Of a stretch of 64,000 bases of DNA, positions 73 through 46,761 are shown piece by piece. Source of the stretch: Lepidodermella squamata (Eukaryota > Animalia > Gastrotricha); assembly GCA_047495785.1 (NCBI GenBank), contig JBLDXI010000033.1:1178001-1242000 (forward strand). The letters run 5' to 3'. How positions within the stretch are numbered: the first letter of the stretch is position 1; each line of letters begins with the position of its first letter. A program made the translations under genes and the position numbers. The notes under the pieces are model-generated. The model saw only the letters and a program-made list of their open reading frames with translations. It was not told where the DNA came from and ran no database searches.

Positions 73-3000
73 GTGAGATCCGGCGTCGTCGTTGGCGATG
101 TTGAGTTCGGCGCTGAGCCATTGCGCACCCTGTTGGCCGCATCGCTCCCACAGCAGCCGTTCGTCCTGGTTAGCCTTGGCGTGATAGACGCGAAGGCAGC
201 CCATCTGCGAGCCGTACATGAAGTACCAAAATTGGAAGCAATAACTCGCAGAATTCTTCATGAGCGCCTTTAAAATTCGCGCCTTGTCGCCCTTCTTCTG
301 CGGCGAGGAGCCTTCGATGAAGGCGTAGGTGCCTAAAATTTATAAAAAAATCGTTAATTATCGGAAAATTAGGGCATGAAAAATTACGTGCAAATTAATG
401 TGAACTCAACGATTAAAATTATAAAAATAAATTCGTGCAGTTTTAATTGATTAAAATCAACGAAAAATCACAACGAAAATGAGTTGAAAGTGTCAAAACC
501 AAAACGCAAAGTGATTAAAATTGACGGTTAAAAAAATTCTGGAATTGTTACTGTACCTATCATGAGTGGATTGACCCCGAAATAGTAACTGAGTGAGACC
601 CACTTTGAAAGGACTGGCGTGTGATAAGGTTTGATATGTTTTTAAATGGGCCGCGCATGCAGATGAGGCACAAGTTGACAAAAATAATATTAATTATAAG
701 CACCGTGAATATAGGTTAAAGTTAGTATCATTTAAAATTGTGACTTTTTTCAAATTATTAAATTTTAAAAAATGCAAGGAAAATACCTTTCGCTTCACCA
801 GACCCGGCGTAGGTGTGGTCGAAAGACGGCCCAGTGCCGTAGGACGGGGTTGGTCCACGGTTCATCTGCCAGTCGAAAATGTCGCCGAAAGAATTCTTCC
901 ACGCGCAAAAGTTGTTCGCCTCGAAATCGCAGAAATCATCGTCCGCATCGGTCGGGCCCAACTGGCACGTTTTCGGCGAGTACGAAACTTGGACGTCGTC
1001 CAACGAAATGGTGCCGCCAAACGTCGGCTGCCCGGCCTCGGCTTCGAACGCAATCTGGAAGAACGGGCCCTTTGGAATAATCGGCGCTTGGCCGCTGAGC
1101 CACGCGTCGCCAAAGTTACCCCGCGCCTCCCAGATAACGTCCTCCTCGAGGCCTGGGTTGATGACAACCATGCGCAACACCCCGGCATCGACGCCGTTAA
1201 CGCCGAAGAAAAATGTGATGCAGTTGACGTCGTAGCTGAAGTAGCGGCTTAGTAGTCTAGCTTTCTGGCCTCGCTTCTGAGGCTGGCCGGTCATTGTGTA
1301 GGCGTAATGGCCGTTTGTGTCACCCCGGCTGTGATCGACCGCCGGCATGGTTGGGTGGCGCTGGCGCACGCTGTTCGGCGAGTATGGCCCGTAAATGTCC
1401 CATGAAAAGTCGCTGTTCGGATCACTGCCCCAGCCACACCACGTTTGCTCAAACGAACAAGTCGCTGTAAAAACATATTGTGAAGTTTTACGAGCTGTAC
1501 AGTGACCACAAATGAAACATCAATTAGTATCGAGGGTAGAAACATTATTCGAGATTAAAAAAGGGAAAAAAACAGGGGCGAAATTCTTAGAAATAGGCAA
1601 GCTATAGGCGTTTTCATCACCTCCAACAAAAAAATGCCATTAAGCTGGTCGAAAAAAATAAGTCAAGGCGGGATAGGTTTTTTTTGTTACCTTTGATTAG
1701 CATGTTCAAGTCTGCGTTAGTGTGGTTAAAATCTTAATTAGCATGTGCCATGCACGAATATATAAAAGGCGCGATCATTTTTTTAGAATGATAATAATAA
1801 TAATATCTGTGGTGTGATTATATGCGAGGTTCAGCGGCGTGTTTTTTACCTGACGTAATGTTCGTGCTACCATCAACAGGTGTGGCCCCGGCACCTCCAA
1901 CAAGGTTTACATTGACAGGCCCACCTTTTGCTGATGACGTTGCGCCGACAATGGGCAGCAACACGGATGCTGGTGTCGCGGTATTGCCGCCTTTTATTAT
2001 TTCATCATTATTCATTCATTAATAATTGAAAACAATTAGTAAAGCGCTAAAAGTCGCACTTTAAATTTTCTACTAAAAATTCCACCTTAATTAATACCTA
2101 GTAATTTTTCCCGATTAATTTTAAACAACTGCCTTCACCACACATTCACCGTTCACCAGAGTGCTATTTTAGGTGTGAAATTAATTGACCTGAGAAACGC
2201 CCTGGTTTTCGCAGTTCAGTGAATAAAATGTGCGTAAAAAAGGATTTTTCAAAAATTTTGAAAAATCCGAACTCCAATGAAAATGATTCATCGCAAAAAG
2301 TGTTGCCGAAAAGCGTCGCATAACTTTACAAATTAGAGGTATTTTCTTGGGTGTTCGATAGCTTAGGTATTAGATGGCTAGCAAATACCCGAAACAGCAA
2401 ACGCGACAAAACAGCAAATTTATTAACTTGCGACATAACAGCAGAAAATCGATGCATCTTTTGAATAGTAAGTTTTTGCTGTTTTGTCGCAAAATATAAA
2501 ATTTGCTGTTTTGTCGTAATTGCTGTTCTGCGAAGTTGCTGTTTTGTCGCCGTACCAAATTGGCACGCAATAAAAATCGGAAACACGCGATAAATTCGGA
2601 TTTTTCTGAAAATTTCATGTCCCAACGATTCCGCGTTTTGATAATTCAAGATCAGTCTCAAAGGCTTCCCGTCAAATATTTCAAAACTTTTCAAAAAAAT
2701 TTCAATTTGAGCGATTTTAAATCCACTTCTCGGTAAAAATGTCACACGGTTAGAAAATTATGCGAAAAGCCGAGAAAAAGTTTGCTCTAGTAAAAAAGAT
2801 CTGAATCTCTAAAAAAAAGTTCAGGGGCTGAAACTATGGGATCTGACCCAATTTCTAAGCAAATTAATAATCCACTAGTTCAATTATTTTTCCACAAATC
2901 TCGCATTTAAATCTTACCGACTACGAGTCTTGGCATCGACCCGCTGACAGGATACAAGAACGGCGACGATTTGCCAGCCGATCTTGGCTGATTCTCAAAC

Positions 3001-6000
3001 GAGATCAACATTTCCGAAGTCGTCGCTAGCTGCGTTGTAGTCGTAGGCCTCGTCGTTGTTGTCGTTGTTGTCGTCGTTGTTGGTGCAGTTGTCGTTGTCG
3101 TAGTCGTCGTCGTGCTAGTCGTCGTACTCGTCGAAGCTGTCTTCTGTTGGTAAGGGTAAAGACCGAGGTTATTGGACACCCCGAGATACGAAGGAATGGA
3201 AAGGCCTACGGATCGAACAACCGGTGACATCGGCAGTAGGACAGGTTGTTGAGCAGGGCCTTCGACACTCAGCTTATTCGAAGGCGGAGCTGGCACAGAG
3301 GGTGGTTGTAAGGACCTAGCGACATTGACGTAAGAAATCGAAGCCACCCTAGGCTGGGTCGACATTGTTTCAACAGGCGTTGTGCCGTAGCCGTGGTCGT
3401 AACTCAACGCGCATTTGTACAACCTGTTGATTTCACGCACGTCCCAATTTGACAGGCCGTTTCGCTGGCCGATCGTTGTTCCGTCTTTCCGCGGCGCGAT
3501 TGTGATGAGATTAGGCGCTTTTGAGAAGTCGCTCGCACCGTAATGCATGACTGATTCGTAGTCGTAGGGCGTGCCCGAGTCGGTGGCGAACTTCGGGTCG
3601 AGCTTTTTGAAGTTCTCCCGCGCGTACCATAGAATATTGTCCCAGATAATGTTGACGTAGCTGTCGCGGTCGGGCCGGTTCTGCTCGTGCCAGAAGCCGA
3701 TGGCGTGCATCAACTCGTGGACGATGGTTCCGTAACGCCAGAAACAGCCAGAGTTAAGGCGGACTAATTGCATGCCTAATTGGCGACCGGCACTTGACGA
3801 ACATCTGTTATTCAAAAAAAAAGTTAATTAGCTGTTGTTGTTGTTGTTGTTCTGATGAGCTGGGAAATATGGGAATTTAATTTATTTTTATTCAAATAAT
3901 TTAGTTTCATATTTCTAATTGAAAAAAGGATGAAGATGCAAATTCAGCGAAAAATCCTAAAACTCATGGAAATGTTGACAAATTTCACTTAAGAAATTTC
4001 GTTCGCGTGGTAAATTTGGTTTCATCCAAGTTACAAAAAAAAGTTGGTGATAAAAATGTGAAGTTCAGCTTCAAATCTCTAATAATTAAAAAATAAATTG
4101 AAAAAGCGGGAAAAAAATCCTGAAACTTTTAGCAAAAATATTGAAAAATGGCATTCACATAATGTTTTTCGACTTGGCCGCCATATTTTAAAATTATTCA
4201 AAATTTAGGTCATTCGTAAAATAAATTCAGACAAAAATATTGGCAAAAATTGAAGTTCGGAATCGGTCACAAAAGAATTCAACAATTCAGATTTTTCAAA
4301 TTTCAAATTTTTAAATTATTCTGGATTTGAAAAAATTGAAACAAATTCCGTTCGTTTGCTGATGGCAATGGAAATGTTTGCAAACCCCACGTGACAATCA
4401 AATTTCTACTGGGTTAGATTTTGGGGCTCGCCACTCACATAGACCGAGAAAAAGCCCTGGATTTGTTCAGAGCCGTACGGTTCCGCCTGTACAACGCCCT
4501 TATTTTCAATAATAAACAGGTTTTTCAAGATCAAGCCCATTTTTAAATTAGCGAATTTCAAAAACAAAAATCACGACTTACAATGCATCCTGAACTTTTT
4601 TGATGTAGATGTAGTCGGTTTCATCGACACGTCGCTGGAACCTGATACACGTCCTCTGGCCGTAGTCTTCGAACGCCCTCAGCAGCATATTCCGCTCCGA
4701 ATCCGCGAAATCGCCATCGATGATGTACGGAATAACGCCATTCGGCCACAGATAGTCGTCATTAGCTATCGCGGCATTGAGTACGTTTTCAGCGCCGGGG
4801 ACGTTCGCCATCGACGACACAAGGATGTCGCCCTCGACAACGTCGTAGCAGTCACCCTCGCTGAGAGCGACGTGCGACAGCGCGACGTCGCGCGAGTTGC
4901 CACCGGTTGTGCCGTCGAAGATGAGCCGGAAGTTGTACGTCGCGTTCAGCTTGACTAGCGCCGTCAGCCACGTCGAGTGCGAGTCGTCCTGTGACGTCCA
5001 CGCGACGTATTCCGCCCGCGATTCATTACGCACGATAACCTTGAGCGACGACAGGCCCTCCGGGTTGAACAGGTAGTACAAAAATCGCAGGCAAAAGCCG
5101 CTATGCATGGCTGAATTCGTCGCCGGCACCCACTCGGAGACGAGCCTAGCATGCTTGCCAAACGACTCCGCCTGCGTTTCCACGTAGATGAAATAGTCGG
5201 ACGTGTTCTGCGGGCCGGCTTGCAGCATTTGCTGGTCGAGCGCGTTGTTGGGCGCGGCGAGGCGCGCGAATGCGGTTATATTGCTGGCCAAGGTCGGCGG
5301 CGCGGTGTTGGTGCGCGAAAATTGCGCCCAGTCGAGGTCGTCGAGTTGTGATTGCGTCCAATAGCATAAGCTGTTGCGGAACTCGCAGTCAATCAGATTG
5401 GTAGCACCAGCGACTGGCTTAATTCCACCTTTAAAATATTAAAAAAAATCCTCCTTAATTATTTTTCATTATTTTTTCATTTTATTTTCATCCGATTTTT
5501 GAATTATATTAGGGAGTCACTCGTTTTTTGTTTTGTTTTGAAGAAGTTGAGAAAGACATGTTTTGCTTCTTTTTGCGTTCAAAATAGCATTTACTGCGGT
5601 TAATGACTATTTACGAAGTGTCCCCGTTTCCCAGACTTCACTACACCCTACAACGGCTTTTACTTGCCTGTTTGCCCTAGTATATTTTGGCGACTCGCGC
5701 CACTCAAATAACCGCTGTATTTTTGTCAAAAGAGCAAGCGCCGGCTATATGCCTAAAACAACCCGGGGCAATAAAACTGTCTGCAGCTATCATTTTATGG
5801 GGCTCACAAAAAGCACAACAGGCGCGCGCAATAGCATTGTCTGTGTTGAAGACAAAATTTTCACCGCACGACAAAAGTGCGGTCATCTAATAATAAGTAT
5901 CTGCTTTTTCATCTCTGCCTTTTCATGAAATAACTGCGTATATCATTACAACCCATCTTTATGGCCCCGTAGGTGGGCGAAACAACGTACAATGAAACGT

Positions 6001-15784: not shown

Positions 15785-16960
15785 ACAAAACTGAAGCAAT
15801 TGAACTTTGCAATTCGCAACGGCTCCAAAACGGCTAGTGACCAAGTCAGTTACTCGGATTTACGCTTCGGCTTCTTCGCCCTAGCAGTTTCGGCTTTCTT
15901 CAACTGCGTCAACCGCGTTCTAACAAAAATACTAACTTCGGAAAGGTCCGAGGAACCTCTCCCAGTTATGCACATTTTGATGATCCGCCACGTTACACTG
16001 CTGATATACGCAATACCCTTCGCAAAGCTGACTGAAGCTCCATTCTTCACCTTCAGCCGACGCGACTGGGTTTTCTTGCTATCAAGATCGGTACTCGCCC
16101 TTGGATCGGCAACAACCAACAATCTGGCAATCATCCTTATCAGCTTACCCGATCTCGCTACTATCACATCAATCACCCCTCTGGTCACCTCATTCGTTAG
16201 CTGGCCGATTTTAGGCGAAAGGCCGAAGTTATCAGACTTCCCGATTTTCTTCATCATGCTCTTTGGTAAAACGGAAATTAGCTCTAAAATATCGGAATAA
16301 TCATTCATGAATCTTAGGAATTATTTTCGTCGTTCAACCAAAGTTCATTTTCGCTGGTTCTGAAAACTACTCACCACCAAATCCAATCGGGGTGGCTCTC
16401 GGCGTGTTCTCTATAATTGCAAGGGTGAGCTAGAACGTAATAATTAAAATTTTAACACCCTCATTCAAATTATTCAGTGCATCACTCATACAAGTGTTCG
16501 AGGTCTTCGCCAGGTTCATACTGCGAGTGTTAATTTCATCTATGGCGTGGTTTCGACCATCCTTCTACTCGCAATCAACTTGATATTTTTCCCCCGGTGG
16601 CCGCCCTGCTCGAAATTTATTCGCTTCGAAACGCTGATGGGTGGAATTCTGATTTCAATCGACATAGCCATGTCAAAACTGGCTGGCCGTAATTTACCAG
16701 CTGCTTTCCTTTCCCTCGGAGCCGGCATGGAAATCATCATCCAGCTAAGCTTCCAAATCATGTTTTTCAATGCAGTTCCCAAGGTGTTCAACCTGATAGG
16801 AGCTCTCATCGTTATAATGGCTTTCGTATTCATCGGTTTGAGAAGCATGCTGGTGCGGAATATGGAATTGAAGGTGAAAGAGAAAATCGACAGTGGCGAT
16901 ATTCCAACTTTGCGAGAACGGCAAGATATCAGTTGCTTTATGAAATTTCTGACTCTTTAA
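15785..16960 (+). CDS. EamA/DMT (SLC35G-like) transporter, copy 1; true start codon not resolved
   Basis: Exons ~15785-16265, 16318-16424, 16478-16960. About 10 hydrophobic helices; motifs LLSRS, SLPDLATITSITPLVT, WPILGERP, FNLIGALIV. Confidence 0.85.
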
Positions 16961-17349
16961 TCTCATCAGTCGGTGAACTAATGAAATGTGATGCCGTAAA
17001 TCTTCAGCTATTATTCACTCGAAAATTCGCATGGAATGGAATTTCGAGAATTTTTCTAAAATTTGAATTATTTAATTCATAGGTAGTTTATAACAGCACT
17101 AAATTTTAAGAGAGCTAGTTCGACTGGTTTCACATAACTATAAATTACGGTCACGTAAATTTTAAAATCTGTCCGATTGATTACTCGAATTGAGAGTGGT
17201 CAAATGCTGGAAAAAAATTCGCAAAATTGAAATTTCACGATTTTTTTCCTCGTGAATAGCTATTAGGAAAACATATAGCACGTTTCATTAGTCCAACGAC
17301 AGTTCTCGAAATTCAACCACAATTCTTTGCGAAGTAAAACACAATTAAA

Positions 17350-19125
17350 ATGACTTATGTAAATAGCTATTTATTTCTTAAAATCGGCTTATTAGCTCAC
17401 CAGTGAATCGATTTTTGCTCGAGATTGCGATGAATAATTGTTAGAAAAGGTGGAAGTCAGATTTCAAACCAAACCAGGCCTCCTGGCCGCAGGGCAGAGT
17501 ATTTTCAGGAGGAAGGCAGGGAAAGTCTTGTATTAAATAGGAAAACCTCCCAGCATGAGAGCGGTGAAGTTGAAAAACATCTTTGTTTGATCAATACGAG
17601 AGCACATCATCATAGATGATATGCAAAATTTTCATATAACATACGTCTGAATATAAGTTGGGCTCGTATTACTGAAGCTGACAAAGAGGAAGAAATAATG
17701 CACCACATCTTAGGCTATGGATTATCTGTCCTTGCAACATCATCACTGTTCAAATGCTTCAACAGAATTCTGATGAAATCACTGACAACAGATAGAGCCG
17801 ACGACCGACAGCCCGTCATTTATGTTCTTCTGATGTGCCATCTCACGCTGGCAATGGTGTCTGTTCCCTACGTTAAGCTGAGCTCGGCTCCTTTTTTCAA
17901 CTTCTCCCTGCGAGAATGGTTTCTGTTGATAACAAGATCTGTTCTATCATTCGGCGTTGCAGCTTCAAATAACTATGCCATCACTGTTATATCTCTGGCA
18001 GATCTCGCGACAATCACCTCAGTCACCCCACTGGTTACTTCATTTTGGAGCTGGCTGATACTTGGCGAGAAGCCAAAGATATCTGACTTCCCAATATTTT
18101 TTATAATGCTCACAGGTAATTTCCTAATTTTATTAAGATATTTCTCTAAAAAGTTTAAGCAGGGGTGATTTTCATTATTCAACCACAATTTATTTTTGGT
18201 GGATCCGAGAATTATGCTCCACCCAACACTTATGGGGTAATGCTTGCAATTGCAACAATCTGCGGGAGGGTAAAACCGAAGTACCACTTTCTAACCTTTT
18301 AATTCAAATGATATTTCCAGTGCCTCGTTCATACAAGCATCAGAGGGCTCCGCAAAACCCCTACTCCCAGCGTGAATTTCATTTACGGTGTTGTTTCTTC
18401 CATAATTTGTCTTGGGATCAACTTCTACGCATCTCCCATCTTGCCACCTTGTTCGGAATTGCTCCGATTCGAGCTGTTGAGCACAGGCCTCATCATGTCC
18501 CTTGACTTCGCAATGTTCAAATTGGCTGGTCATACCCTTCCCGCATATTTCCTGTCCCTTGGAACGGGCCTAGAGCTGGTTTTCCAACTCGTGCTTCAAA
18601 TCGTCGTCTATGGCGCTGTGCCCAAGCTTTTCAACCTGATTGGAGCGTTAATAGTGGGCGGCGCATTCGGCCTCATAGCAGTGAGAAATATGTTACTGCG
18701 TAAAATAGAGCTCAAAAAGCTGAGGGTCCAGACAACTGGCGAAATTGAAACTTTAAAGGAGAAGGAAAATATTAGTTGTTTCACCAAATTTTTAACTCTC
18801 TGAACGATGGCTCATTTCTGAAAGGAGTTTTTCAGGCTTCCATGTGATTTTATCTCTTCTACTCAAGTGCTTAGGTGAATAAAACATGCACGCCAGCCTT
18901 TATCCTAACCTTCAAGTTATGAATCATGTAACAGACAGAAATGCAAACCGGAAGTAGAGCGCGGGTTGATCACACAAGACGCAATGTTTACAAGAAAATT
19001 CAAATGATCATAACGGACTTGAGTATTCCCAAGTAATATTTGGATGCTCGCCTTTAGTGAGGGCTTACAAGTAATTTCGCCTGATATGTTAGCACTACTG
19101 CAACCAATCATTCAGAGAAAAATCA
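17350..19125 (+). repeat. Segmental duplication unit A1 (EamA gene plus flanks), paralogous to 21709-23870
   Basis: Shared non-coding anchors: GTAAATAGCTAT, GAGATTGYGATGAATAA, AAAAACATCTTTGTTTGATCAATAC, TTATCTCTTCTACTCAAGTGCT, TTCAAATGATCATAAC, TATTTGGATGCTCGCCT. Confidence 0.9.
17698..18803 (+). CDS. EamA/DMT (SLC35G-like) transporter, copy 2
   Basis: Exons 17698-18115, 18163-18269, 18321-18803; same intron positions and phases as the other copies; WLILGEKP motif. Confidence 0.88.
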
Positions 19126-19706: not shown

Positions 19707-19713
19707 TATAAAA
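19707..19713 (+). promoter_or_regulatory. TATA box of sHSP gene 1
   Basis: TATAAAA ~115 nt upstream of the ATG; the paralog has TATAAG at an equivalent position (32790). Confidence 0.55.
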
Positions 19714-19822: not shown

Positions 19823-21248
19823 ATGGCCTGCTCTTTCGCTAACAACGCTTCATCCGTCCTGTCGGCTGGTTTCGACGGTCTTGCTGCCAAGCTTGGCCAA
19901 TACAACCAATCTGGTCTCGCTGGCATCAACGCTGCCACTAGCAACGGCGCCAATAGCTGCAACGTTTCTGCTGCCCAAATCAACGCCAACAACATCGCTG
20001 CCCAGATCGGCGCAAAGATCGGCCAGGAGTACGGCGCTCAGCTGGGTGCTACTATCGCCGGCCAGCTGAACGCCACCTTCGGGGCCCAGTGGGCCGCCCA
20101 GCTGGGAGCTGCCTACGGCGCCGAGGTCGTCGCCGAGTTGGGTGCCCAACTGGCCGTCTTCGCCGCCGCCACCGGTTTCGGCGCCCAGTCGACCGCCCAA
20201 CAGGGTGCTCAGTGGGGTGCTCAGGCTGGCGCCCAGTTGGCCGCTATTCTGGCTGCCAAGCTCGGCGGACAACCTGCTGGTATCTTCGCCAACAACCAGG
20301 CCGTCGCCCAGATCGGCGCCGCGATCATCTCGCAGGCTGGTGCCAAGTTGGGTGCTTGCGTCGCTGCCCAAATCAACGGCGGCGCCTTTGGTGCTGGTGC
20401 CAACAGCAGCAACATCGCTGGCAACTTCGGCGGCGTCAACGCCATCAACAACGGCCTGTTCGGTGACCTGAACGGCTACAACGCTGGGCTTCTCGGTGCC
20501 AACTTCGGCGCTTTCGGTGCTAATGTCGACAAATTGGCTGGCGCCAACAGCAACTACGCCAACTTCTCTGGTAACTTCGGTGCCAACACTTTCGGTGGCG
20601 GAAACCTCGCCAACCAGGCTGGTCTCTTTGGCGGAAACATCAACGGCCTCGCCAACTCGCAGGCTGCCGCCGACCATCTATACAACATCGCCTTCCGCCC
20701 GTCCAGCCAGGCCGAGCTCTACACCCTGACCAACCCGGTGCAGTACGTCGACAACCAGGGCAACCGCCAGCTGTTCCTCGCCTTCGAGCTCAAGGGCTTT
20801 AAGCCTGAGGAAGTCACCGTCACCCTGAACAAGGCCGAGCGCGCCGTCGTCGTCGAGGCCGCCCACGACATCAAGGAGGGCAAGGAGCACCAGATCTCCC
20901 GCAAGTACTCGCGCAAGTTCGTCCTGCCCGAGGTGAGTAAAATCATAGAATATCTCAATCAACTCTAAACTAATGCTTTCCTTTATCTTTCAGACCCTTG
21001 CCAAGATCGACCTGGCCAAGGTTGAGCTCAAGTCGCATCTGAACGCGAATGGCTTCCTGACCATCGAGGCCGAGCTGCCGAAGCTGAGCGCCGAGGAGAT
21101 CGCCAAGCTGCCGGTTTCTTCGTCTCAGCTGCTTAACGCCGCTGCCCTGAACAGCAGCAACGTCTTCGGTGGCAACAACCAGTACGACAACAACGTCTAC
21201 GGCAACATCGCCAACGCCGTCAAGCCCGTCACCGTCAAAACTGCCTAA
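19823..21248 (+). CDS. Giant small heat-shock/alpha-crystallin-domain protein 1 (454 aa) with Gly/Ala helical-repeat and N/G/F-rich N-terminal extension
   Basis: Exons 19823-20932 and 20994-21248. Crystallin-domain motifs FELKGFKPEEVTV, ISRKYSRKFVLPE, SHLNANGFLTIEA; C-terminal IXI-like VKPVTV; AATAAA at 21351. Confidence 0.9.
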
Positions 21249-22041
21249 ATATGGAATCTGTAAGCTTTGGAGCATAGAAAAACTCGAAGTGAAAAAACCA
21301 TTGAAATCAATGTGATTAAACAAGTGCGATCGAATTGTATTCTGATATGCAATAAATCAGAACTTTTCTCTGAATTTCGTATTTTCGTGGTGTCGGTTTT
21401 ATTAGTTCCAATCATCATTCTTTGCTCGCTTATGATATAGGTCATTGACACGCAAGCAATAACAAAAAGACCGAACTGAGATAAAATCAATTTGATCTTT
21501 ACAACGATTGAATACCAATTGCTAAATGCAATGTCTTCTCATCCTGTACAGTGGGCCACATTAAAAATCGATCATTATAGGGCGATTTAGGTGACTAAGG
21601 GTGAAGTCCACCTACTTTTTCCTTGTCGTCATCGCTTGGTCGCTTGGTCGCGTAGCTCCAAAGACGGTCGACTATTATCTATTTTCTGAAAATTAAAACA
21701 AGTAGAATATAACTTACGTAAATAGCTATGATGAGATTACCGCGATGCGAATTTTTTCATATCGGATCATCGCCCCCAACTGGATTCTCGCATGAGATTG
21801 TGATGAATAAGCTTAAAAAAGTTTTCTTAAAAAAGTCAGACTGAAACCAAACAAGGTGGTAGGGCAGAGTATTTGTAGCAGGAAGTTGAGCAGAAAGCAG
21901 GAAGTGAAGTCCTTTATCATTATGAGAAAAGCTTCTACCATAAGAGCTGTGAAGTTAAAAAACATCTTTGTTTGATCAATACCACCATAGATGGTGTATA
22001 CGCAATTCTCACATAGTCTGAGAATTGTAAGTTAAACTCGA

Positions 22042-23587
22042 ATGACTGAGGCTGACAAAAAGGAAGAAATAATCCAACACAGCTTAGCCTATGGATTCTC
22101 TGCTCTTGTAACATCGTCGCTGTTCAAATGCTTCAACAGAATTTTGACGAAATCACTGACAACGGACAGAGCCGACGACCAACAGCCCGTCATTTACGTT
22201 CTATTGATGTGCCATCTCACACTGGCAATGGTTTCCGTGCCCTACGTTAAGCTGAGCGAGGCTCCTTTTTTCAATTTTTCCCTGCGAGAATGGTTTCTGC
22301 TGATCACAAGATCAATTCTGTCGCTTGGGGCCGTAGCTTCAAATAACTACGCAATCACTGTTATATCTCTGCCAGATCTTGCGGCAATCACTTCAGTCAT
22401 CCCTCTGGTTACTTCATTTTGGAGCTGGCTGATACTCGGCGAGAGGCCAAAGATATCTGACATTCCGATTTTTATTATAATGCTCACAGGTAATTTCATA
22501 ATTTTATTAAGACATTTCTCTAAACACATTAAACAGGAGTGATTTTCATTATTCAACCTCAATTTATTTTTGGTGGATCCGAGAATTATGCTCCACCCAA
22601 CACTTATGGGGTGATGCTTGCAATTGCAACCATCTGCACGCTGGTAAAACGGAAATACCACTTTCATATGACATAGATCGGACTCCGAACTCAGATCACT
22701 TGGCTGACAAAAGGACGTGCTCATTTGTTGGCTCATGAATATTCTAAATATTTTGCAGCCTAAAAAATGGCGGGGTTTTATTCGAATCCGTTCATTAAAA
22801 TATAAACATTTGAAATTGATTATTTCAAGTTCTGAAGATGGCAAAAGTAGTGGTTTGGCGCTGTTTGACGCTACCAAGAAGAGATGCATCTTTAAAGCTT
22901 CTCCTGATGAGAGAGCAGCAACTGCTCGAAATTAGATCTAAAGTAAACAGAAATAGCACAAGAAATATTGGGGTGGAAAATTATGACATGATTGATCTCA
23001 TCAATTTGATACAATGAACTTGGTCTGACTTCAGTTTTTTGTTTACGGCGTCCTATCTATGTCACATACATTGTCTAACCTTTTAATTTGAACGATATTC
23101 CCAGTGTTTGGTTCATACAAGCATCAGAGGGCTCCGCAATACCCCGACTCCCAGCGTGAATTTCATCTACGGCGTTGTTTCATCCATAATTTGTCTAGGG
23201 ATCAATTTCTACGTATCTCCCATCTTGCCTCCATGTTCGGAATTGATTCGATTCGAGCTCCTGAGCACAGGCCTAATCATGTCCGTTGACTTTTCCATGT
23301 TCAAATTGGCCGGCCATACCCTCCCTGCGTATTTCTTATCGCTTGGATCGGGCCTGGAGCTGGTTTTCCAACTTGCTCTGCAAATCGTTGTCTACGGCGC
23401 TGTGCCCAAGCTGTTCAACCTGATTGGAGCGTCAATTGTTGTCGGCGCATTTGGCCTTATAGCTGTAAGAAATCAGTTACTGCGTAAAATGGAGCTGAAA
23501 AAGCTAAGAGCCACGTCAACCGGCGAAATTGAAACTCTAAAGGAGAAGGAAAATGTTAGTTGCTTCACCAAATGTTTAACTATCTGA
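22042..23587 (+). CDS. EamA/DMT (SLC35G-like) transporter, copy 3
   Basis: Exons 22042-22489, 22537-22643, 23105-23587; protein highly similar to copy 2. Confidence 0.88.
22669..23064. mobile_element. 396-bp non-autonomous insertion with TG...CA ends, ~15-bp TIR and 4-bp TSD (CATA)
   Basis: Left end TGACATAGATCGGAC; right end reverse complement TGACATAGATAGGAC; CATA at 22665-22668 and 23065-23068. Absent from the paralogous intron of copy 2 (51 nt vs 461 nt). Confidence 0.85.
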
Positions 23588-24182
23588 ACTCTACTGGCAC
23601 ATTTTTTAACAGAGATTTCCAGGCTTCCGAGTTATTTTATCTCTTCTACTCAAGTGCTTTGGTAATAAAGCATGTATGCCAGTCTCTATTATTCAAATGA
23701 CTAAAATTAAGAATCCTGCAACAACATACCGGAAGTAGGACGGTTTGATGACTCAAGATAATTCAAATGATCATAAACCAAGTGATATCTGATATTTGGA
23801 TGCTCGCCTCTTTTGAGAGCTTACATTTTTTCGCCTGATGCTGGAACCGCTGAAACCACCAGAAAATCCATAAAAAAACCTCAATTAAATATCCCTCCGA
23901 ACGCATTTTATTTGTCGGACTTTCCTTTGGAAATCTTTCAACGCTAACGGCTAAAGTTATCAAATACACCAGGTCACAGTTATATTGCCCATCGGCTGTA
24001 ACAATGAGATGCCACGTCTAGCTATAGGGTGGAAGTGCGCAAATGGGGCACACGTCTGGAAATGTGCGCACCCTTGAAGAAGTAATCAAACGGTTATACA
24101 GTGGCGGTTAAGAATACAGTTAGACATTAACGTGGAATTTGAAGATGTTTGTTTTATGCTTCTCAGATAATTTTAACTGGCT

Positions 24183-25731: not shown

Positions 25732-28700
25732 ATGAAGCGGATGTCGATTTTCACCATTTTTCCAGTAAGCTAAAGCTTTTGAGCTGGGTTTTTTGTACAA
25801 CTCAGTAATCAAATGACCAATAAATAATGTCTGCTCATCGTTTGCCTCTTTTACAGGCACAGTCGGCATTATCTTCGAAGTGGATAGAGGATTCCTTTCA
25901 CCGGAGCGAATGCAGACAATTCATCCAAGACATCAACAATCGGGATAGGTAACAAACTCCTCAATATTCTCCAGGTAGCCTACGGAAACTGTATTCCTAT
26001 TAGGTGTGGATGCGGACGCGATAGAGCGTCCCATGGGTCAGGGATATCAGACACCCCGCCAATCGGCTATTGGTCCTCGAAACGTCATACCGACAGTTCG
26101 CCAACTGACGCCTATGGCACTGTTGAGTTTACAACAGGAGTGCACTCTCACTACATAAGGATGAGCCCATTATCTCGTCCGAATGACGTGATCCGCCTGT
26201 TAACTGAGCAATGGGGTGTCGACCCTCCGAAACTTGTCGTCACCATTCATGGTGGAATGAACAATTTCGATCTACCCCCTCATGTCAAGCGTGATTTCCG
26301 CCGAAGTCTGCAACGCATGGCTGCTGTTCCGGGTTGCTGGATCATAACGACAGGCCTCAACACCGGGATAGCGAAACATGTCGGAGATGCGATAACTGCA
26401 GGATTGTTGCGGCGAAACCGCGCTGTTGTTATTGGAATCGCTCCTTGGGGTGTTGTAGCCGGCAGAAATCGCCTGGCTGTCCGGAATGCCAATGTCCACT
26501 ACTACCCTCCCGCGAATGCCTCTGGGGCAAATGTCCTCAACCCGAACCATTCGATTTTCCTGCTTATCGACGACGGAACGGTTGGCAAATACGGGCATGA
26601 GGTATGGAACCCAATTCAACTGAAATGCCCTGATTAACCTGATATCTTAGGTAAAATGGCAGCAAGATTTCGAACGGAGCCTTTCTGTGCCGTTAATCGC
26701 TGTTTTAGTGGAAGGTGGAGCTCACTGCATAAGAAGGTCAGCTGATTATCTTGCTGCAGCAAAACCTTTGGTAGTCATGAGCGAAACTGGCCGGGCTGCT
26801 GACGTTCTCACGCTGTCTCTCAAACTCGGCTCAAGCAGCTTTGAAGAGTCAGATTTGAATATCATTTCTGCACAAATTGAACAGGCCTTCGGATCTTCAA
26901 GCTTTGCTCACAGGAACAAGGCTATTATTAACGATTTGACAGCGTGTCTTAAGCGTAGGAAGTTTATAACTGTATGGTCTGGCGGGGTAAGCAACTCGGA
27001 GCTCGACGTTTGCATACTTACTGCATTGCTACGATCTCAAGAACGGACTCCAATTGAGCAATGGCGACTCGCTCTGGCTTGGAACCGAGTTGATTTGGTT
27101 AGCAACGAGAAGCTACCTAGCTCTCTAGCGGCTAGAAACAGCTCATCGCCTCTTGATGAATCTCTCAACGAGGTTCTGCTAGAAGCCGTAGCAATGGACC
27201 GGATAGATTTCGTGAAACTACTGCTGAAACAGGGTATTAACCCTGGAGAGGCGCTCAATCACAAACGCTTAGAACGGTTGTACAACTTACGAAGCACAGA
27301 CAGCTGGGTCATTCGAGATTTGATCCGCCTGGTTCTTAAACGCCAAGTTGTTGGGCGAATTACTTTGCTCGACATTGGCTACATCCTCGAGACATTGATG
27401 GGGTATGGCTTCAGGTCGAGTTACTTGACGATGAAACCAGCAAAGAAATCGAAAACTGCCGTGTTGGATCAACAATTTCGCTATCCTTTCTCGGACCTTT
27501 TGGTATGGGCTATTTTGATGCAACGTCATGAAATGGCTCGTCTGATGTGCACGAAAGGCGAGGAAACTCTAGCCAAGTCCATTGTGGCTTGCCGTCTCTA
27601 TAGATCTATAGGAAAAATTTTGGCGGCAGACGTCACTTCTGAGATAATTTCTGAGTTCAGGAGGCTGGAAAAAGAATTTGCGAACCTTGGAGTTGATCTG
27701 TTGACAAAATGCCACAAACAAGATGACCTGCTTGCCCAGCATCTTTTGACCAATGAGTTGAGCTACTTCTCCAACAAAACCTGTCTAAGCCTTGCAGTAT
27801 CAGCGAGTCATAAACATTTGGTCGCCCATCCTTGCAGTCAAGGTTTACTAGACGCTCTATGGACGGGCGGGTTGAGGCAGAGATCAACCAGACCTTGGAA
27901 AATTCTTCTTGGACTCCTCTGTCCACCGTTTGCAGTTCTAGGTTTGAGGTACTTGAGTGAAGAAGAACTGAGTCTCCAACCTCAAACCGAAGCTGAAATC
28001 GAGGAGCAACGCCTCGAGCAATCTCATGAGTTGGAGAACATGGAGAATCCTGATGTTCAAATACCCACGCTTCAAGTCCCGGCTATAAGTCTTAGCCATG
28101 CCGAAAGCAGGCAATCACTTGGGTTAAGTAGACAGATTTCTCGCTTTTACAGCTACCAAGCAGGTGGTGGAAGCTTTCGAGCCAACCGTCAGGCGGCCCG
28201 TGAATCCGTGTTTGAATTTGCTTTCAAAGAGGAGGAACTTCATGATAAATCATCGGCTTCATTGCCAGCAACTCCGAACGGAAATAACGATCAATTCATC
28301 TCCGGGCACAGGGCATCTCTTCAAGACGAAATTGGTGAGCAATTGAGTCGCGGAACCCCCCTAAGCGCTGCAAAGCGAATTTACGAATTCTACAACGCTC
28401 CCGTCACGAAATTCTGGCTTCACTCGGTGAGATTTATCAATTGTTTTGCTTCTCTTCAATATTGCTGAATATCATAGATTGGATACGTTGTTTTCATTCT
28501 GTGCTTTTGCTACACCATTTTAACGGAATCTTACATGTCATACGCTCAATGGCCCGAGATCTATATATGCTGTTACGTCGTGACAGAATTCTTGGACAAA
28601 ATTCGCGAAATTGCTTTCATCAACGCGCGTTCTATTCCGGCGAAATTGAGGATTTACTTCCTCGATGGATGGAATATGTTTGACGCAGCTGGTGTATTTT

Positions 28701-29874
28701 TGTTTCTCATTGGCCTTGCGATGCGATGGTCCAATGAGTCCTTCGAAGCTGGCCGAGCTTTCTGGATTGTTTCAATCGTTTGCTTCATGATTCACATCTT
28801 CGACATTTTTCAAGTAAACGACGACCTTGCTACTTATATTATGATTTTACAGGTATGTTAAAAATTAAGGTGGATTGCAATGTTTTATCTCAAGTTCTAT
28901 TACAGAAAATGATGAAACAAATGATCAGTTTTCTGATAATTCTCGGCGTTGTCGTAGTCATGTACGGAATCGTTCTTCAAGCAGCCAGATTTCCCTACAG
29001 AATCCCTGAATGGGACATTCTGAAGGATGTATGGGTTGAGCCGTATCATAATCTGTATGGTGAAGTGTACCATGAGTACGTCGATGTTCGAGCTTGCGAT
29101 TCAGACTATCGTAACTCGACAAGTCGCGACAAGCCTCCTTGTTGGTGCTGCACCTGGTTGGCACCTGTCGGCCAGGCCATCTATCTCATCGTGGCGAATG
29201 TCCTCATGTTGAACCTTCTAGTCGCCGTTTTCAACTCAGTGTTCGAAAAGGTCAGTCGGATCTCGAAGGCACTTGTTCGTTTCCAGCGATACCGGTTGAT
29301 AGTAGACTACCAACTCCTGCCAATTCTTCCTCCGCCTTTCATTGTCTTTAACTACATTTATTTTATTGGGAAAGCTGTTTTTCGAGCTGTTAAAGGTCGC
29401 AAGTCACGAGCTCGGGACCCTGGCCTCCTCAAGATTATTTTGACGCCGCAAGATTTGGCGGCCTTACATGACTTCGAGGAGCAGGCTCGCGACGAAATGG
29501 AGGAACAACTTCTTGCTAGTGAAGTCACCCGTTTTCACCGCGAAGATGATCACTTGGCCAAATCTGCGGCGGAAAAGCTTGAAGCAATCCAAACTTCACT
29601 TGAGATGATGATGCAAAAGCAAGCGGCAATTTTGGCAATGTTGCAGTCCAAGAATTCGCAACTAGAAGAAAACGCCTCACTGCCTCCTAGTATGACGAAT
29701 GAAGCTGGCCAAATGCCAATTGATAACGATATACCAAAGAGGCAACGATTTCTCAGGCTACATGGCGTATCTGAGTCTGCGCTTGAAGATGACGCTGCTG
29801 AGACAACAGAAGAGGGTGACATCGACCGACAACTATCATCGATTGCATTCGAGACGAACCAAGATTTTTCATAA
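25732..29874 (+). CDS. TRPM-family cation channel (~1280 aa), with no C-terminal kinase or NUDT9-H domain
   Basis: Exons 25732-25764 (alternative in-frame ATG at 25827), 25857-25948, 26004-26601, 26651-28426, 28478-28852, 28906-29874. Motifs WIEDSFHRSEC, CGCGR, TDAYGTVEF, VVIGIAPWG, LNPNHSIFLLIDDGTVGKYG, LALAWNRVD, FYNAPVTKFW, pore PYHNLYGEVY, NLLVAVFN, LPPPF. Confidence 0.93.
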
Positions 29875-31771: not shown

Positions 31772-32380
31772 ATGGCCCTATCGACTGCAGCCCTGCTGAA
31801 ATGCGTCAACCTACCAAACCTTCTGCTGTTGAAATCTCTAGTATCTCCTAGATCTGATGAGCAATTAACTGTTATGTTTCCTCCCATTTCTCGTGATTTT
31901 TATCATTCAATCGCATTTTATTTTCGCCGGATCGGAAAACTACGCGCCTCCAAATTTGATGGGCATTTTTCGATTATTAGGTTCGGCTACGACTATTTTA
32001 AACTTTCAATCAAGTTTTTATGTAACAATTTTCAGTGCTTGTTTCAGCCTGCGTGCGGGCTTCTTCGGAAAGTCCCAACAGCCAGTCTCAATTTCATTAA
32101 TGGTGCGGTTTCTTGGATCATTTGCATATCTATCGATATGGCATTCGACCTAAAATTTCCAGCGTCGTTCCTATTTCTTGGCGCGGGGCTTGAACTCGTC
32201 TTTGAACTGCTGATTCAGCTGATATTTCTCGATATCGAGGCGAAATTTTTCAACATGATTGGAGCTCTTATTGTGATATCTGCGTTTGGTCTCATTGCTG
32301 ACAGGCATTTTTTGGTACAAAGAACTGCCGATGAATACGGTCGAATTGGGAAATGCTTTGTTCAATTTCCGACTATTTGA
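31772..32380 (+). pseudogene. Degenerate EamA/SLC35G-like paralog
   Basis: Fragments of all three exons are recognisable (LLKCVN..SPRSDEQ; VIFIIQSHFIFAGSENYAPPN in another frame; ASLNFINGAVS..LGAGLELVF..FNMIGALIV), but most of exon 1 and part of exon 3 are deleted. Confidence 0.8.
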
Positions 32381-32902
32381 GGCACAAACCGAAATTATCC
32401 GAGAAGCGTTGAAAATTCTTGATTAGTGAATAATGACGATGAAATTGGTGAAAATAAAAGAAAATAAAAGGAATAAGCAGGTAGGTAGCAGGTCTGCAGG
32501 CTGCAGGGGCGGACGAAGGCCGGAATAACGGGTTTCATCGATATCCTGCGATACGGCTAATATACAGCTGCTCCTACTTCGTAGCAGAACAACAAATAAT
32601 AACAAAGCGCCACGAAAATTCATCTTCCACGAAAAACAAGTAGCATGATCGCGTGCAAAGACACGTGCGCTCGATCACATGCTGAAAAAAAGTTGCTGAC
32701 AGGGCAAGGTGACTGGCAGGTTGATTGTTGTAGGCCACGCGGGCCTATTTTTGGAGCCAGGCTAGCACGCGATTCGCGTCTAAAACGCCTATAAGAAGAG
32801 GGTGTGGCTTCATCGAAATATTCATCATCTGCTCATTCGCAATTTGCATTTAGCAATCTAAAGTCTTTTCAGTTTTTCGTAGCCTTCAAATCTTCAAATA
32901 AA

Positions 32903-34336
32903 ATGGCCTGCTCATACACCTCGATGCCCTCGACCTTCGGCGCCGCCGCCGGCTACACCAGCCCGATCAGCGTTGAGAACATGCTCCGCAACAAGGTCGA
33001 CCTCTACTCGGCCCTGCCCGTCGAGCGCAGCCTCATCAACGCCAGCCCGATCGTCGGCAACACCTTCGCCTCGGCCGCTCCCTTCGGCGGTGCCTTCGAG
33101 ACCGAACAGGCCCTCCGCTTCGGTGGTGCTGGCTCCGTCGTCGAGTTCGGCGCCCACACCGGCCGCGTCTTCGGTGCCGACTGCGGCGCCCAGCTCGCCT
33201 CGATCGTCGCCGCCCGCCTCAACACCTTCCTCGGCCACGAGGTCGCCGTCCGCATCGGCGCCCAGTGGGGAGCTGAGGTGTGCGCCAAGCTGGGTGCCGA
33301 GCTCGCCGTCAAGCTCGCCAACGGCTGGCCCGTCGAGCAGTGCGCCCGCTGGTGCTACACCTTCGGAGCCGAGCACGGCGCCGAACTGGGTGCCGTCATC
33401 GCCCAGCGCCTGGGTGCCATCTACACCGCCGAGCACGCCGCCCGCGTCTCGTCGATGCTCTTCGCCGAGCTGAGCCAGCAGCTGTGCTACGTCATCGCCG
33501 CCCGCCTCGGCGAGTCCCGCTTCGGCGCCTCCTTCGGCCGCTTCAACAACTGGACCGGCTCGTACCCGACCACCTACGGATCGTACGCTGGCAACTACGG
33601 CTACCCGACCACCTTCGGCTCGTTCGAGCGCTTCGGTGGCCTGTTCGGCGGTCGCCCTGAGCTCTTCAACAACACCAACACCTTCGGCTCATACCCGACC
33701 ACCTTCGGCTCCTTCGGTGCCAACACCTGGGCCAACACCCCCAACACCTGGTTCAACACCATGTCTGGTGACAACAAGCTGTACAACATCGCCTTCCGCC
33801 CGTCGTCGGAGCTCGAGATGTACACCCTGACCAACCCGATCCGCATGATCGACGTCGAGGGCAACCGCCAGCTGTACCTGTGCTTCGAGCTCAAGGGCTT
33901 CAAGCCTGAGGAGGTCTGTGTCACCCTGAACAAGGCCGAGCGCGCCGTCGTCGTCGAGGCCGCCCACGACATCAAGGAGGGCAAGGAGCACCAGATCTCC
34001 CGCAAGTACTCGCGCAAGTTCGTCCTGCCCGAGGTGAGTAAAATCAAATTTCAATCAACTCTAACTTCATGCTGTTCTTTGTCTTTCTAGACCCTTGCCA
34101 AGATCGACCTGACCAAGGTTGAGCTCAAGTCGTGCCTGACCCAGGAGGGCTACCTCGTCGTCGAGTGCCAGCTGCCGAAGATGACCACCGAGGAGATCGC
34201 CAAGTCGCCGATCATGTCCGAGCTGTACAACAAGATGCCGTTCGGTGGCTACAACGCCGTCCACAACTTCGGTGGCATGCCCTCGATCAGCAGCCACTAC
34301 AACAACGTCAAGCCCGTCACCGTCAAGACTGCCTAA
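32903..34336 (+). CDS. Giant small heat-shock/alpha-crystallin-domain protein 2 (458 aa)
   Basis: Exons 32903-34033 and 34091-34336; same MACS start, same intron position, same crystallin domain and VKPVTVKTA end as gene 1; TATAAG at 32790; AATAAA at 34448. Confidence 0.9.
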
Positions 34337-34851
34337 GCGATGAATTATCTGCTAAATTGCGCAAAATTGAAAGAACTTGATGCCGTTAGAAAGACTCGTG
34401 TGTGATACTGTGATAAACCTGACCCAATATCGGTCTTGATCAAGTATAATAAACGGAAATTTCGCGTGCTCATATCAGTCAAAAGCCAGACTCTTTCATT
34501 TCATTTCTTTAATTTCTTCAGATCATACAAGAGTTCAATTATTACGATATCATAGCGTTCAAAAAGTTGATTCAGTTTACTCGTCGCTGATTACATATAC
34601 ACACATTAGATCATAATCATGGAAATAACGGGTCTAAAAATACACGATGATTCATGACAGAAACCAGTTCTCTCTCTAGCCGGAAAATAAACTTCCATCT
34701 AATGTTCACACAAGAGAAAGATAGTTGAAGTAGAGATTGTTGTATTTTATGGTAAAAATCGGATCGTATACTAATAAACAACACAATTTTGTGTAAATAA
34801 CCGTGTAAAGAAGGGGGAATTTTGTGGAAAATTCAAAACTTGCGGCGGCAG

Positions 34852-44547: not shown

Positions 44548-45352
44548 AATTGTAGTTACATGCGCCCAGTTTTTTGCGCCCAGCGTTTTTGCGCCCACAA
44601 AAATGCGCCCTGACTTTTGCGCCCCGACATTTGCGCCCAGATTCAAGCGCCTTGACATTTGCGCCCGGACTTTTGCGCCCCGTATTTTAATGCCCTGACA
44701 ATTGCGCCCTGACACTTGCGCCCCGAGATTTCTTTGTTGGAAGATAACTTTGTTCTCCTAATTATATACCTTAGATCCTAATATGAACTGGCTGGTCCCC
44801 AAATACCTGCGATCTGTGATTAAAGTAGATATACCTGAACATTTTGAATTAGACTTTTCAGATATTAATAAAAAACCACCCAGGTGAAGAGATCGAGAGA
44901 GGTGATTTTAGGGTTATCGAAGGTTCGATTCCAAAAAATCAGCAGTCAATAATAAAATCGAATCCTGGAAAACAAAATCGATACCCTTATTCTACAGGAG
45001 CCAATATATTTTTTAGATATTTTTCCAGAATTTTAGGAAGTCAACCGCAGGTCTAGTGGAAAAAGTTATCAAACTTTTACCTTTCAAAATTGTACTCCTC
45101 CTGGGTAACATGAAATTAACTAACGAAGATATGAAATCATGAAATAGTTGCCATTGGCAAAGCGGAAAGAACACTGGGCGCAAATGTCGGGGCGCAAATG
45201 TCAGGGCGCATACTGGATGTGCGCAAAAGTCGGGGCGCAATTGTCAAGGCGTAAATTTATGGGCGCAGTAGTCAGGGCGCAAAAGTCAGGGCGCATTTTT
45301 GTGGGCGCAAGCACGCTGGGCGCAAAATTCTGGGCGCATGTCACCATCTACC
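44548..45352. mobile_element. Mutator/Foldback-like element with ~175-bp inverted arms built of ~14-bp TTTGCGCCC repeats
   Basis: Arms at ~44555-44730 and ~45170-45345 are reverse complements; 9-bp direct repeat CTTATGTCG at 44539-44547 and 45353-45361. Confidence 0.82.
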
Positions 45353-46761
45353 CTTATGTCGCTTCTCGAGTGCTCAGTTACCGCTACTTTGCAGGTATAA
45401 TTTACCTGAAACTGGCTCTTTAGAATTTACTGCTTTCACCTCAATAATTACCAGCTTCATTTTGGTATAAAGCATTCTATCTAAAACCACCCAGGTGAAG
45501 AGATCCAGAGGGCCAATTTTAGGGTTTTTGAGGGTTTGATTCCAAAAATTAGCAGTCAATAGGGGAATTGAATTCGGGAAAACAAAATCAATACTCTCAT
45601 TCTACAGAAGGCAAGGGATTTTTTAGATAATTTTCCAGAATTTTAGAAAGTCAACCGCAGTTAGGCTATTAGGTAGAAAACAAGTTATCAAACTTGTACC
45701 TATCAAAACAAGTTTGAGTTTCAGGCATCACGTCGTCGAGGAAAAGCTCACAGGTGAAGCAACAAAGGCAGTTTTTATAGTCAGCTTTTTGAGACAAATC
45801 TAACGATACCAAACTTATGGTATTAGTGTACCTGGATGAGGTGGCCGAAATTAGGGCACCCCGCTCCCTAATTCCGGCCGGGTGTCTGGGTGACTAAAAA
45901 ATTAGCCATAAATCAAGGTAAAATCGTCCGGACTTGCGGAAAGCGGCATTCGATAGCCTAATAACGCCTCTTTAATTCTGCTTATGCCGAATATTTTCTG
46001 AAAATTTACCTGGCTGGCAAAGTCGGAAAAACCTGAAAAGCGGCCGAAATTAGGGCGGGGTCCTCTAATTTGATCGAGAGAAAGCTATCAATGGCCTACG
46101 TCATAGAATAGGAATTAACTTTAACTCGCATGTGACCATCAGGCCATGAATTAAATTTTGCTGTCTATGATCATAGCGGTCTATAATGAGTGCTGAAAAA
46201 ACATTGCGGCAATAATGGATGAGTGGATTGAGGAAAAAAAATACTACCTAGGTATCACAAGTTATACAGGTGCGATTAAATTTAACGCGTTTTATACCTA
46301 GGTATGTAAAAAAAGTCGACAGAAGGGCAATAAATTGTGAAATAACAGCGGTCGCGACTATCTTGAGTTATTATTCTTTTCAGCATCGAGCAAATAGTTT
46401 TCTCGGCTTCCCTATGAATAGAAGTTGCATCGCTTTGCCCATAATGCATTCTGGCCAGCTACTTTGCGTGCCTTTCTCGCTAAATAATTGATTTTTTGTC
46501 TGTAGTAATAATCTCTATGCACCTGGTTCAGTACACATCAGATATAGGAAAAATCAAAACAAAACGAAGAATATGCGATATTACAGCAGAGTTTTAATCT
46601 GAGCTAGTCTCGAAATAATCACTAATAAAACGATGAGTCGCAACAAAAATCAGTAAGGAAAAATTGGAGGTAAAAAACCTCTTTATCAGCATGACATCAA
46701 TTTACACGCGAAAAAAATGATAAAGAGGAGTCATTAATGCAAATAATTTCTGTCAATGATT

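Follow-up and report, generated by a model that had tools for sequence, protein, structure and literature searches.

The 64-kb window analysed here, a 64,000-nucleotide stretch of Lepidodermella squamata contig JBLDXI010000033.1, carries on its forward strand two genes for oversized small heat-shock proteins (sHSPs), in which an alpha-crystallin domain (ACD) is preceded by a Gly/Ala-rich repeat block that is predicted to be helical. Gene 1 consists of exons 19823-20932 and 20994-21248 and encodes 454 amino acids; gene 2 consists of exons 32903-34033 and 34091-34336 and encodes 458. Both models were derived from the list of open reading frames and the raw sequence with in-frame splicing. They agree with the initial annotation, which put both proteins at about 455 residues and considered them unusually long: all eight peptides it quoted are found (8/8), and the proteins are about twice the size of canonical sHSPs of 208 amino acids. 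A single GTGAGT..(C/T)AG intron interrupts the crystallin domain in each gene, at 20933-20993 in gene 1 (61 nt, GC 0.30) and at 34034-34090 in gene 2 (57 nt, GC 0.32). TATA boxes lie 116 nt upstream of the start codon of gene 1 (TATAAAA, 19707-19713) and 113 nt upstream of that of gene 2 (TATAAGA, 32790-32796), and polyadenylation signals AATAAA are located at 21351-21356 and 34447-34452.

The two proteins are laid out alike. The N-terminal lead of gene 2 (residues 1-80, 32903-33142) is predicted to be disordered, with per-residue confidence (pLDDT) of 22-35 in AlphaFold2 (AF2), and that of gene 1, which starts MAC (residues 1-55, 19823-19987), is predicted to be so by analogy. The Gly/Ala tetrad-repeat block follows at residues 56-190 of gene 1 (19988-20392), where four predicted helices and period-4 statistics support it, and at residues 81-210 of gene 2 (33143-33532), where predicted helices accompany repeat anchors at residues 89, 121, 153 and 185. 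Next comes a low-complexity linker recognised by its composition, rich in Gly, Asn, Ala and Phe in gene 1 (residues 191-283, 20393-20671) and in Gly, Thr, Phe, Asn and Tyr with 7-residue repeats in gene 2 (residues 211-292, 33533-33778; pLDDT below 35). The first half of the ACD ends exon 1 (residues 284-370, 20672-20932, in gene 1; residues 293-377, 33779-34033, in gene 2). Exon 2 (20994-21248 and 34091-34336) encodes the second half of the ACD and a C-terminal extension ending in VKPVTVKTA before the stop codon.

The block shares an exon and an open frame with the first half of the ACD, in keeping with the initial annotation, which treated the two as parts of one transcript. Run X1 has nine contigs with an intron-skipping joint at 20930>20992 (GT..AG) and run X2 has none, the behaviour of RNA in X1 and of DNA in X2. 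Since exon borders are conserved, the joint may derive from paralogues. The conserved part of the ACD is covered by X1 contigs of very high k-mer depth, and downstream of gene 1 the X1 depth stops inside the bin 21309-21375, in which the polyadenylation signal lies.

Pfam HSP20 (PF00011) matches the end of exon 1 in gene 1 (residues 319-370, E 1.5e-5, 25.5 bits) and in gene 2 (E 2.1e-5, 25 bits), above the curated cut-off of 20.8 bits. Exon 2 alone has no Pfam match; that of gene 1 aligns (BLASTP, 47% identity, E 1e-17) to residues 176-245 of P0001, a relative whose gene has no intron. In P0001 and two further intron-less relatives, L041 and L042, PF00011 scores 30-33 bits and is covered over profile positions 11-90 of 102. 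The reading frame is maintained over the GT..AG intron in both window genes, giving a complete ACD, and the nearest solved ACD is that of HSPB1. Among the 35 gene models of the family described below, 34 end in PVTV followed by K-T/S-A, the exception (L020) ending in PVAV; PVTV appears to be the equivalent of the I-x-I anchoring motif of sHSPs. Judged by the ACD, its completion across the intron and the C-terminal motif, both proteins classify as members of the sHSP family.

The window genes belong to a large family. A six-frame search of the source genome (121 Mb) gave 103 matches. From 40 retrieved loci, 35 intact models with two exons each were built; they are 277-579 residues long, and all of them start with Met-Ala and have the intron at the identical place. 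At least 44 loci in the genome carry the crystallin domain of the family, 39 of them together with the helical block. A profile built from the block alignment (A1) likewise recovers 39 block loci, every one coinciding with an sHSP exon-1 locus (39/39), and the whole-genome search with this profile found no stand-alone copy of the block. The block is missing from two members in the genome, L020 and L040, which have FPSTWTGS-type repeats only. Many paralogues share a TATA-like box at positions -102 to -116 and, about 30 nt downstream of it, a conserved CATCATCAATCA-like start region.

Outside the genome, P0001 was the sole match of a word-indexed protein search with exon 1; the same search with the ACD region alone returned nothing, low-complexity words saturating the candidate list. 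A metagenome scan contributed at least two relatives, L041 and L042. These three proteins, of 253-284 residues, all lack the helical block. Their ACD is significant in Pfam, and their low-complexity N-terminus is of aromatic/Gly type, in L041 and L042 with repeats of the FPSTFGG kind. An ACD tree sets the giant family and these outside relatives apart from the ordinary sHSPs of the genome (support 89/86). The ACDs are homogenised and the inner forks of the tree do not resolve, so the order of block gain and loss does not emerge from it. K-mers of gene 2 were found in poly-A metatranscriptomes from fresh water and in sequencing runs that carry at least ten different organism labels.

Divergence between the two window genes is mosaic. 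The ACD DNA, intron included, is 86.7% identical between gene 1 (20678-21107) and gene 2 (33779-34204). Synonymous divergence (dS) in the ACD is unusually low, 0.08-0.15, also between these two genes, and reaches 0.6-2 in their N-terminal parts. This pattern suggests gene conversion confined to the ACD; the low ACD dS and high DNA identity point to gene conversion, codon-bias constraint or both.

The block is the most distinctive part of these proteins. It comprises about 130 residues in four repeats of about 32 residues, each composed of strict period-4 tetrads (hydrophobic, Gly/Ala, Ala, polar). Repeat starts in gene 2 are exactly 32 residues, or eight tetrads, apart; in gene 1 the spacing has been altered by indels to 28, 33 and 39. 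Repeats resemble each other above the level of shuffled sequences (z 9.6 for R1-R3 and 8.3 for R2-R3 in gene 2). Small residues are autocorrelated at lag 4 (+0.47 in gene 1, +0.44 in gene 2), hydrophobic residues recur likewise, and Fourier power is maximal at 4.0-4.1 residues. GxxxG occurs nine times in gene 1 and seven times in gene 2, against 3.6 and 1.8 in shuffles, and these counts were matched by 2/2000 and 1/2000 shuffles, respectively. The motif GA..[GAC]A.[LIV] is found seven times in gene 1 and five times in gene 2, frequencies matched in none of 2000 shuffles, and each block contains three strict GxxxGxxxG-type motifs. Across the three subfamilies the block is 25-39% identical to that of gene 1, with 17 invariant columns in alignment A1, mostly Gly, Ala and Leu. 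Repeat scores, shuffle statistics and subfamily identity together bear out the earlier description of a conserved, four-repeat, GxxxG-periodic N-terminal block.

Tandem Repeats Finder detected no DNA-level tandem repeat in the block, so its repeats are old and diverged and do not reflect a recent microsatellite-like expansion. In subfamily 1, omega is lower in the block (0.12-0.18) than in all other regions, the linker being at 0.30-0.59, and indicates purifying selection. Between subfamilies dN/dS amounts to 0.6-1.3, values that are not to be trusted, since dS is depressed by extreme codon bias and by conversion.

AF2 predicts four helices in the gene 1 block (A1), at residues 2-31, 37-66, 70-95 and 103-134 of the domain, with a pLDDT of 74.6 and a predicted template-modelling score (pTM) of 0.68. 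A separate model of residues 1-291 of gene 2 places helices at 76-105, 112-139, 144-170 and 176-206 with a pLDDT of 50-68; both flanks, including residues 1-81, fall below 35 and resemble disorder. The helical character claimed for the block is thus predicted in two separate models, neither of which renders it fully disordered. The hydrophobic moment is greater at 90 degrees than at 100, where whole-helix moments are 0.08-0.20, and the hydrophobic stripe would therefore wind round an ideal alpha-helix.

The initial annotation called the block unrecognised, and no described family was returned by Pfam, the PDB, the Atlas, Foldseek or a profile search against a library of 1.84 billion representative proteins. 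Against the PDB, the block yields insignificant results by sequence profile (E 0.37) and, as a model, by Foldseek (best E 0.82). Against the Atlas, shape comparison gives TM scores of at most 0.55, and ESM Atlas feature searches with both blocks gave no usable match. A wide VIA-align search reached a best Z of 6.7, to catenin, talin and sensor-type bundles, which is under the noise level that the tool states for helical proteins. Nothing in Pfam is significant, the one recurrent touch being Yae1_N (PF09811). The deca-GX3 proteins Yae1/Lto1 have, like the block, a long GxxxG run of strict period 4. As an assignment Yae1_N was rejected: the best E is 0.043, below threshold, 9 of 25 members are touched, and the likeness is one of composition and periodicity in an unrelated protein context.

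The profile search of representative proteins gave 22 weak matches, ten of which were inspected and consist of simple tandem repeats of 4 to 10 residues, such as (GAQV)n; six of the ten scanned carry DUF6745. Tetrapeptide-array proteins of this kind (P0003, P0007, P0008 and others, mostly DUF6745), the top matches of that search, share with the block the period-4 Gly/Ala-x-hydrophobic pattern. Their repeats are near-perfect and in tandem and they have no ACD, whereas the block is diverged and segmented into four 32-residue units, and the arrays are best regarded as analogues of its periodicity, not as relatives. The absence of a homologue of the block applies outside the near lineage of the source genome.

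The linker that joins the block to the ACD resembles FG-rich sequences. In gene 1 its 93 residues include seven FG and two GLFG motifs and three charged residues. Family linkers are nearly chargeless, contain 7-18 FG and 1-9 GLFG motifs (18 and 9 in paralogue L003) and differ widely in length among paralogues. In the linker of gene 2, Tandem Repeats Finder identified 21-nt repeats at 33556-33623 and 33720-33760. With GLFG-type FG nucleoporin domains it has in common a lack of charge, a high content of Gly, Asn, Phe and Leu, and the FG and GLFG motifs; the likeness is compositional only, and neither a nucleoporin domain nor homology to one is present. Cysteines number ten in gene 2, 13 in L021 and three in the gene 1 subfamily. 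Some of them align between subfamilies 2 and 3 in A1, as judged by eye, and Cys3 is common to subfamilies 1 and 2.

Regulatory sequences separate the giant family from the ordinary sHSPs of the same genome. We scanned 400 nt upstream of each family gene for trimeric nGAAnnTTCnnGAAn heat-shock elements (HSEs), with six ordinary sHSP genes as a positive control. None of the 35 family promoters contains a perfect trimeric HSE, and all of them together contain nine one-mismatch sites. In the six canonical promoters, on contig C24, there are 3-5 perfect HSEs per promoter, and the one-mismatch sites add up to 33. The C24 cluster (L046-L049, L055-L057) consists of near-identical intron-less sHSP genes for proteins of 208-213 amino acids, each with 3-5 perfect trimeric HSEs, which lie 150-280 nt before the ATG in six of the seven genes. 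Classical HSEs are thus in use in this organism but missing from the giant family, which places the family outside the heat-shock factor (HSF)/HSE regulon. A further sHSP-like frame on contig C55 (L054:2914-3471, forward strand) starts MASCPTGSCGTSC and has FGGNFGG repeats before its ACD; its early end is probably at an intron, and it may be an intermediate between canonical and giant sHSPs.

Codon usage is equally distinctive. GC content at third codon positions (GC3) is 0.77-0.94, against 0.46-0.48 in neighbouring genes; in genes 1 and 2 it stays at 0.60-0.98 along the entire coding sequence, and the intron and flanks have a GC of 0.30-0.43. High GC3 and the deep X1 contigs over the shared ACD agree with heavy expression. 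Lack of HSEs, TATA promoters, extreme codon bias and concerted evolution in combination point to bulk proteins with constitutive or developmental expression.

We lean, by a small balance of probability, towards the reading that the giant sHSPs form a holdase or sequestrase matrix or a structural bulk material, and that they are neither heat-induced chaperones nor membrane proteins. The architecture comprises a disordered lead, a four-helix tetrad block, an FG/GLFG linker, an intron-split ACD and a C-terminal PVTV. In such a protein the ACD and the V-x-V motif would assemble dimers and oligomers of the usual sHSP kind, the helical block would pack through its small Gly/Ala faces within the chain and possibly between chains, and the uncharged FG-like linker would add weak cohesive contacts, so that very large assemblies, condensates or a gel could result. 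Gel formation, or the polymerisation proposed by the initial annotation, would be plausible, and the structural, storage or stress-tolerance role suggested there would fit the amplification, codon bias and missing HSEs. More specifically, though with considerably less assurance, the family might supply a hitherto unrecognised kind of bulk intracellular material in a rotifer-like animal, with sHSP cores cross-linked by the tetrad domain and nucleoporin-like FG linkers into a protective or stiffening gel or lamina. Made from a chaperone fold, such a material would correspond in function to tardigrade CAHS gels or to the syndermatan skeletal lamina.

Several observations weigh against the matrix or bulk-material reading. 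The confidence of the AF2 models is moderate and their input alignment consisted of paralogues only, and Ala/Leu-rich sequence is readily modelled as helix. The period of 4.0 residues departs from the 3.6-residue turn of the alpha-helix, a mismatch that lowers the whole-helix moment and makes tertiary packing uncertain. The homodimer prediction for the block (score 0.02, fold of the partner uncertain) favours neither side. Missing HSEs are compatible with other stress regulation. As to expression, the very high X1 depth belongs to the ACD common to the paralogues, the N-terminal region of gene 1 itself being thinly and patchily covered (depth 1-56). The depth of contigs is a poor guide to expression levels, and no contig was found that bridges the block and the ACD of gene 1.

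A narrower proposal, which we consider doubtful, is that the proteins make up a hardened intracellular or egg structure, such as the rotifer skeletal lamina, an egg envelope or a sperm structure, in which the sHSP core would be the unit of assembly and cysteines would supply the cross-links, comparable to ODF1/HSPB10 in mammalian sperm tails. In its favour are the dozens of copies in tandem, their concerted evolution, the extreme codon bias and the missing HSEs; the linkers are rich in Gly, Tyr and Phe, as in many structural proteins, and the ten cysteines of gene 2 and 13 of L021 include some conserved between subfamilies. Rotifer lorica proteins are reportedly of about 39 and 47 kDa and held by disulfides, sizes near those predicted for the family. 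Yet the gene 1 subfamily has only its three cysteines, no signal peptide is present, so that any such structure must be intracellular, and we found no literature tying sHSPs to the rotifer integument.

An association with membranes or lipids is less probable still. The four helices, taken as amphipathic, would open onto membranes or lipid droplets in the manner of exchangeable apolipoproteins and bring holdase activity there in stress. The enrichment of GxxxG and small-xxx-small motifs is significant and could be read in this way, and among the best, though weak, Foldseek matches are four-helix membrane proteins such as the V-ATPase c subunit and subunits of complex I, although these matches are insignificant (TM 0.28-0.42, E >0.8). 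There is also precedent for sHSPs that bind lipids, such as HSPB6 as described in PMC11402235. The sequence of the block fits poorly with this role. The maximal Kyte-Doolittle mean over 19 residues is 1.46 in gene 1 and 1.19 in gene 2, so no segment reaches the usual transmembrane threshold of 1.6. Each fourth residue is Gln, Glu, Arg or Lys, the helical moments at 100 degrees are low, and a signal or anchor sequence is lacking. The membrane-active or pore-forming helices considered in the initial annotation are not borne out by these hydrophobicity and moment values: the GxxxGxxxG pattern is present, but the block lacks membrane-spanning hydrophobicity and does not qualify as a transmembrane glycine zipper.

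It is very improbable that block and linker are merely tolerated low-complexity expansions of a disordered sHSP N-terminus, with no role beyond substrate binding or oligomer tuning: sHSP N-terminal regions are typically variable, L020, L040 and the three outside relatives keep the ACD without the block, and the database matches of the block are simple tetrapeptide repeats only, but the block is the most constrained region in subfamily 1, keeps an exact 32-residue spacing and 17 invariant columns despite the low identity between subfamilies, and shows no repeat at the DNA level.

The matrix or bulk-material reading has partial parallels among known sHSPs. Canonical metazoan members, such as HSPB1, alphaB-crystallin and the 208-residue sHSPs of this genome, share the Pfam HSP20 ACD with the giants, and the canonical paralogues end in PITVNRI where the giants have PVTV, both being [IV]-T-V. 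The giants differ in being about two times longer, with a folded-looking four-helix N-terminal domain and an FG-like linker in place of a short disordered arm; compared with the canonical sHSPs of this genome, they also have an intron inside the ACD and no HSEs, whereas the canonical genes are intron-less with 3-5 HSEs. Yeast Hsp42, an sHSP of 375 residues, sequesters misfolded proteins by means of a long N-terminal extension that includes a prion-like domain. Like the giants, it is oversized and has an aromatic/Asn/Gly-rich low-complexity region before the ACD, and both could plausibly act as sequestrases or through condensates. Unlike them, Hsp42 is single-copy, is not known to have a Gly/Ala tetrad helical domain and is, as far as is generally known, unrelated in sequence outside the ACD.

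Structural use of the chaperone fold is exemplified by ODF1/HSPB10, an sHSP-derived protein of the outer dense fibres of the sperm tail with an ACD and a repetitive Cys-containing extension; its repeats are C-terminal Cys-Gly-Pro units, and it is not known to have a Gly/Ala helical block. Artemia p26 is of ordinary size and low copy number. It is presented in PMC3428274 as an abundant diapause-specific sHSP of encysted embryos and sets a precedent for sHSPs as bulk protectants. A helical repeat domain is absent from p26. HSP48 of Dictyostelium is characterised in PMC6584373 as a large putative chaperone that is induced in development, not by heat alone, and that forms a condensate through an added region. 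According to that account the addition is a C-terminal disordered tail stabilised by polyphosphate, while the additions of the giants are N-terminal and include predicted folded helices. The EtAHS proteins of Echiniscus testudo were dropped from the comparison, as they are described as fully disordered with no mention of HSP20 or crystallin. Our literature searches found no description of an sHSP with a Gly/Ala tetrad-repeat domain. Oversized sHSPs with low-complexity additions and abundant dormancy sHSPs are already known; the putative folded Gly/Ala tetrad domain would be new among them.

The window holds other features besides the two sHSP genes. Gene 1 lies between tandem copies of an EamA-like transporter gene (16547-18903 and 21926-23689); identity between 17541-18903 and 21926-23689 is about 86%, and 22042-22539 matches Pfam EamA with an E of 2.7e-10. 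A multi-pass open reading frame resembling an EamA-like transporter is also found at 31772-32380, immediately 5' of gene 2, and the sHSP genes may have duplicated jointly with the transporter genes. Between the two sHSP genes, at 26687-29871 (forward strand), there is a TRPM2-like channel gene whose exons are very long and whose domains are SLOG, TRPM2 and ion-transport. ENA metagenome proteins match it best, at 42-46% identity; its named sequence matches come from insects and a nematode, and the nearest Atlas clusters are of rotifers. An astacin metalloprotease gene with a MAM domain and a meprin-like architecture is encoded on the reverse strand at 2907-5291. A 984-residue open frame at 53724-56675 (forward strand) combines NB-ARC (E 2.1e-12) with a winged helix of APAF-1 type and numerous ankyrin repeats. 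The channel, the astacin-MAM protease and the NB-ARC-ankyrin protein mark the source as an animal. Domain searches of the genome found neither nematode cuticle collagens nor arthropod R&R chitin-binding domains, and on sequence evidence alone a rotifer seemed the probable source. Inverted and direct repeats form a nest at 44558-45767, and three tandem copies of a 450-520-nt unit, 77-82% identical, occupy 59602-61711. The 64 kb contain no Rfam matches at gathering score and no tRNA genes.

The N-terminal regions of normal sHSPs are short and disordered, and control oligomer assembly and client binding. In this amplified family that arm appears to be replaced by a conserved, probably folded helical repeat domain and an FG-like linker, and the family has lost heat-shock control and gained features usually tied to very high expression. 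The strict period-4 Gly/Ala helix would be an unusual packing motif. If the giant sHSPs indeed form a protective or structural matrix, they would represent a new way for animals to turn the chaperone fold into a bulk material, and a candidate dormancy or desiccation protectant in a group for which little is known of such proteins.

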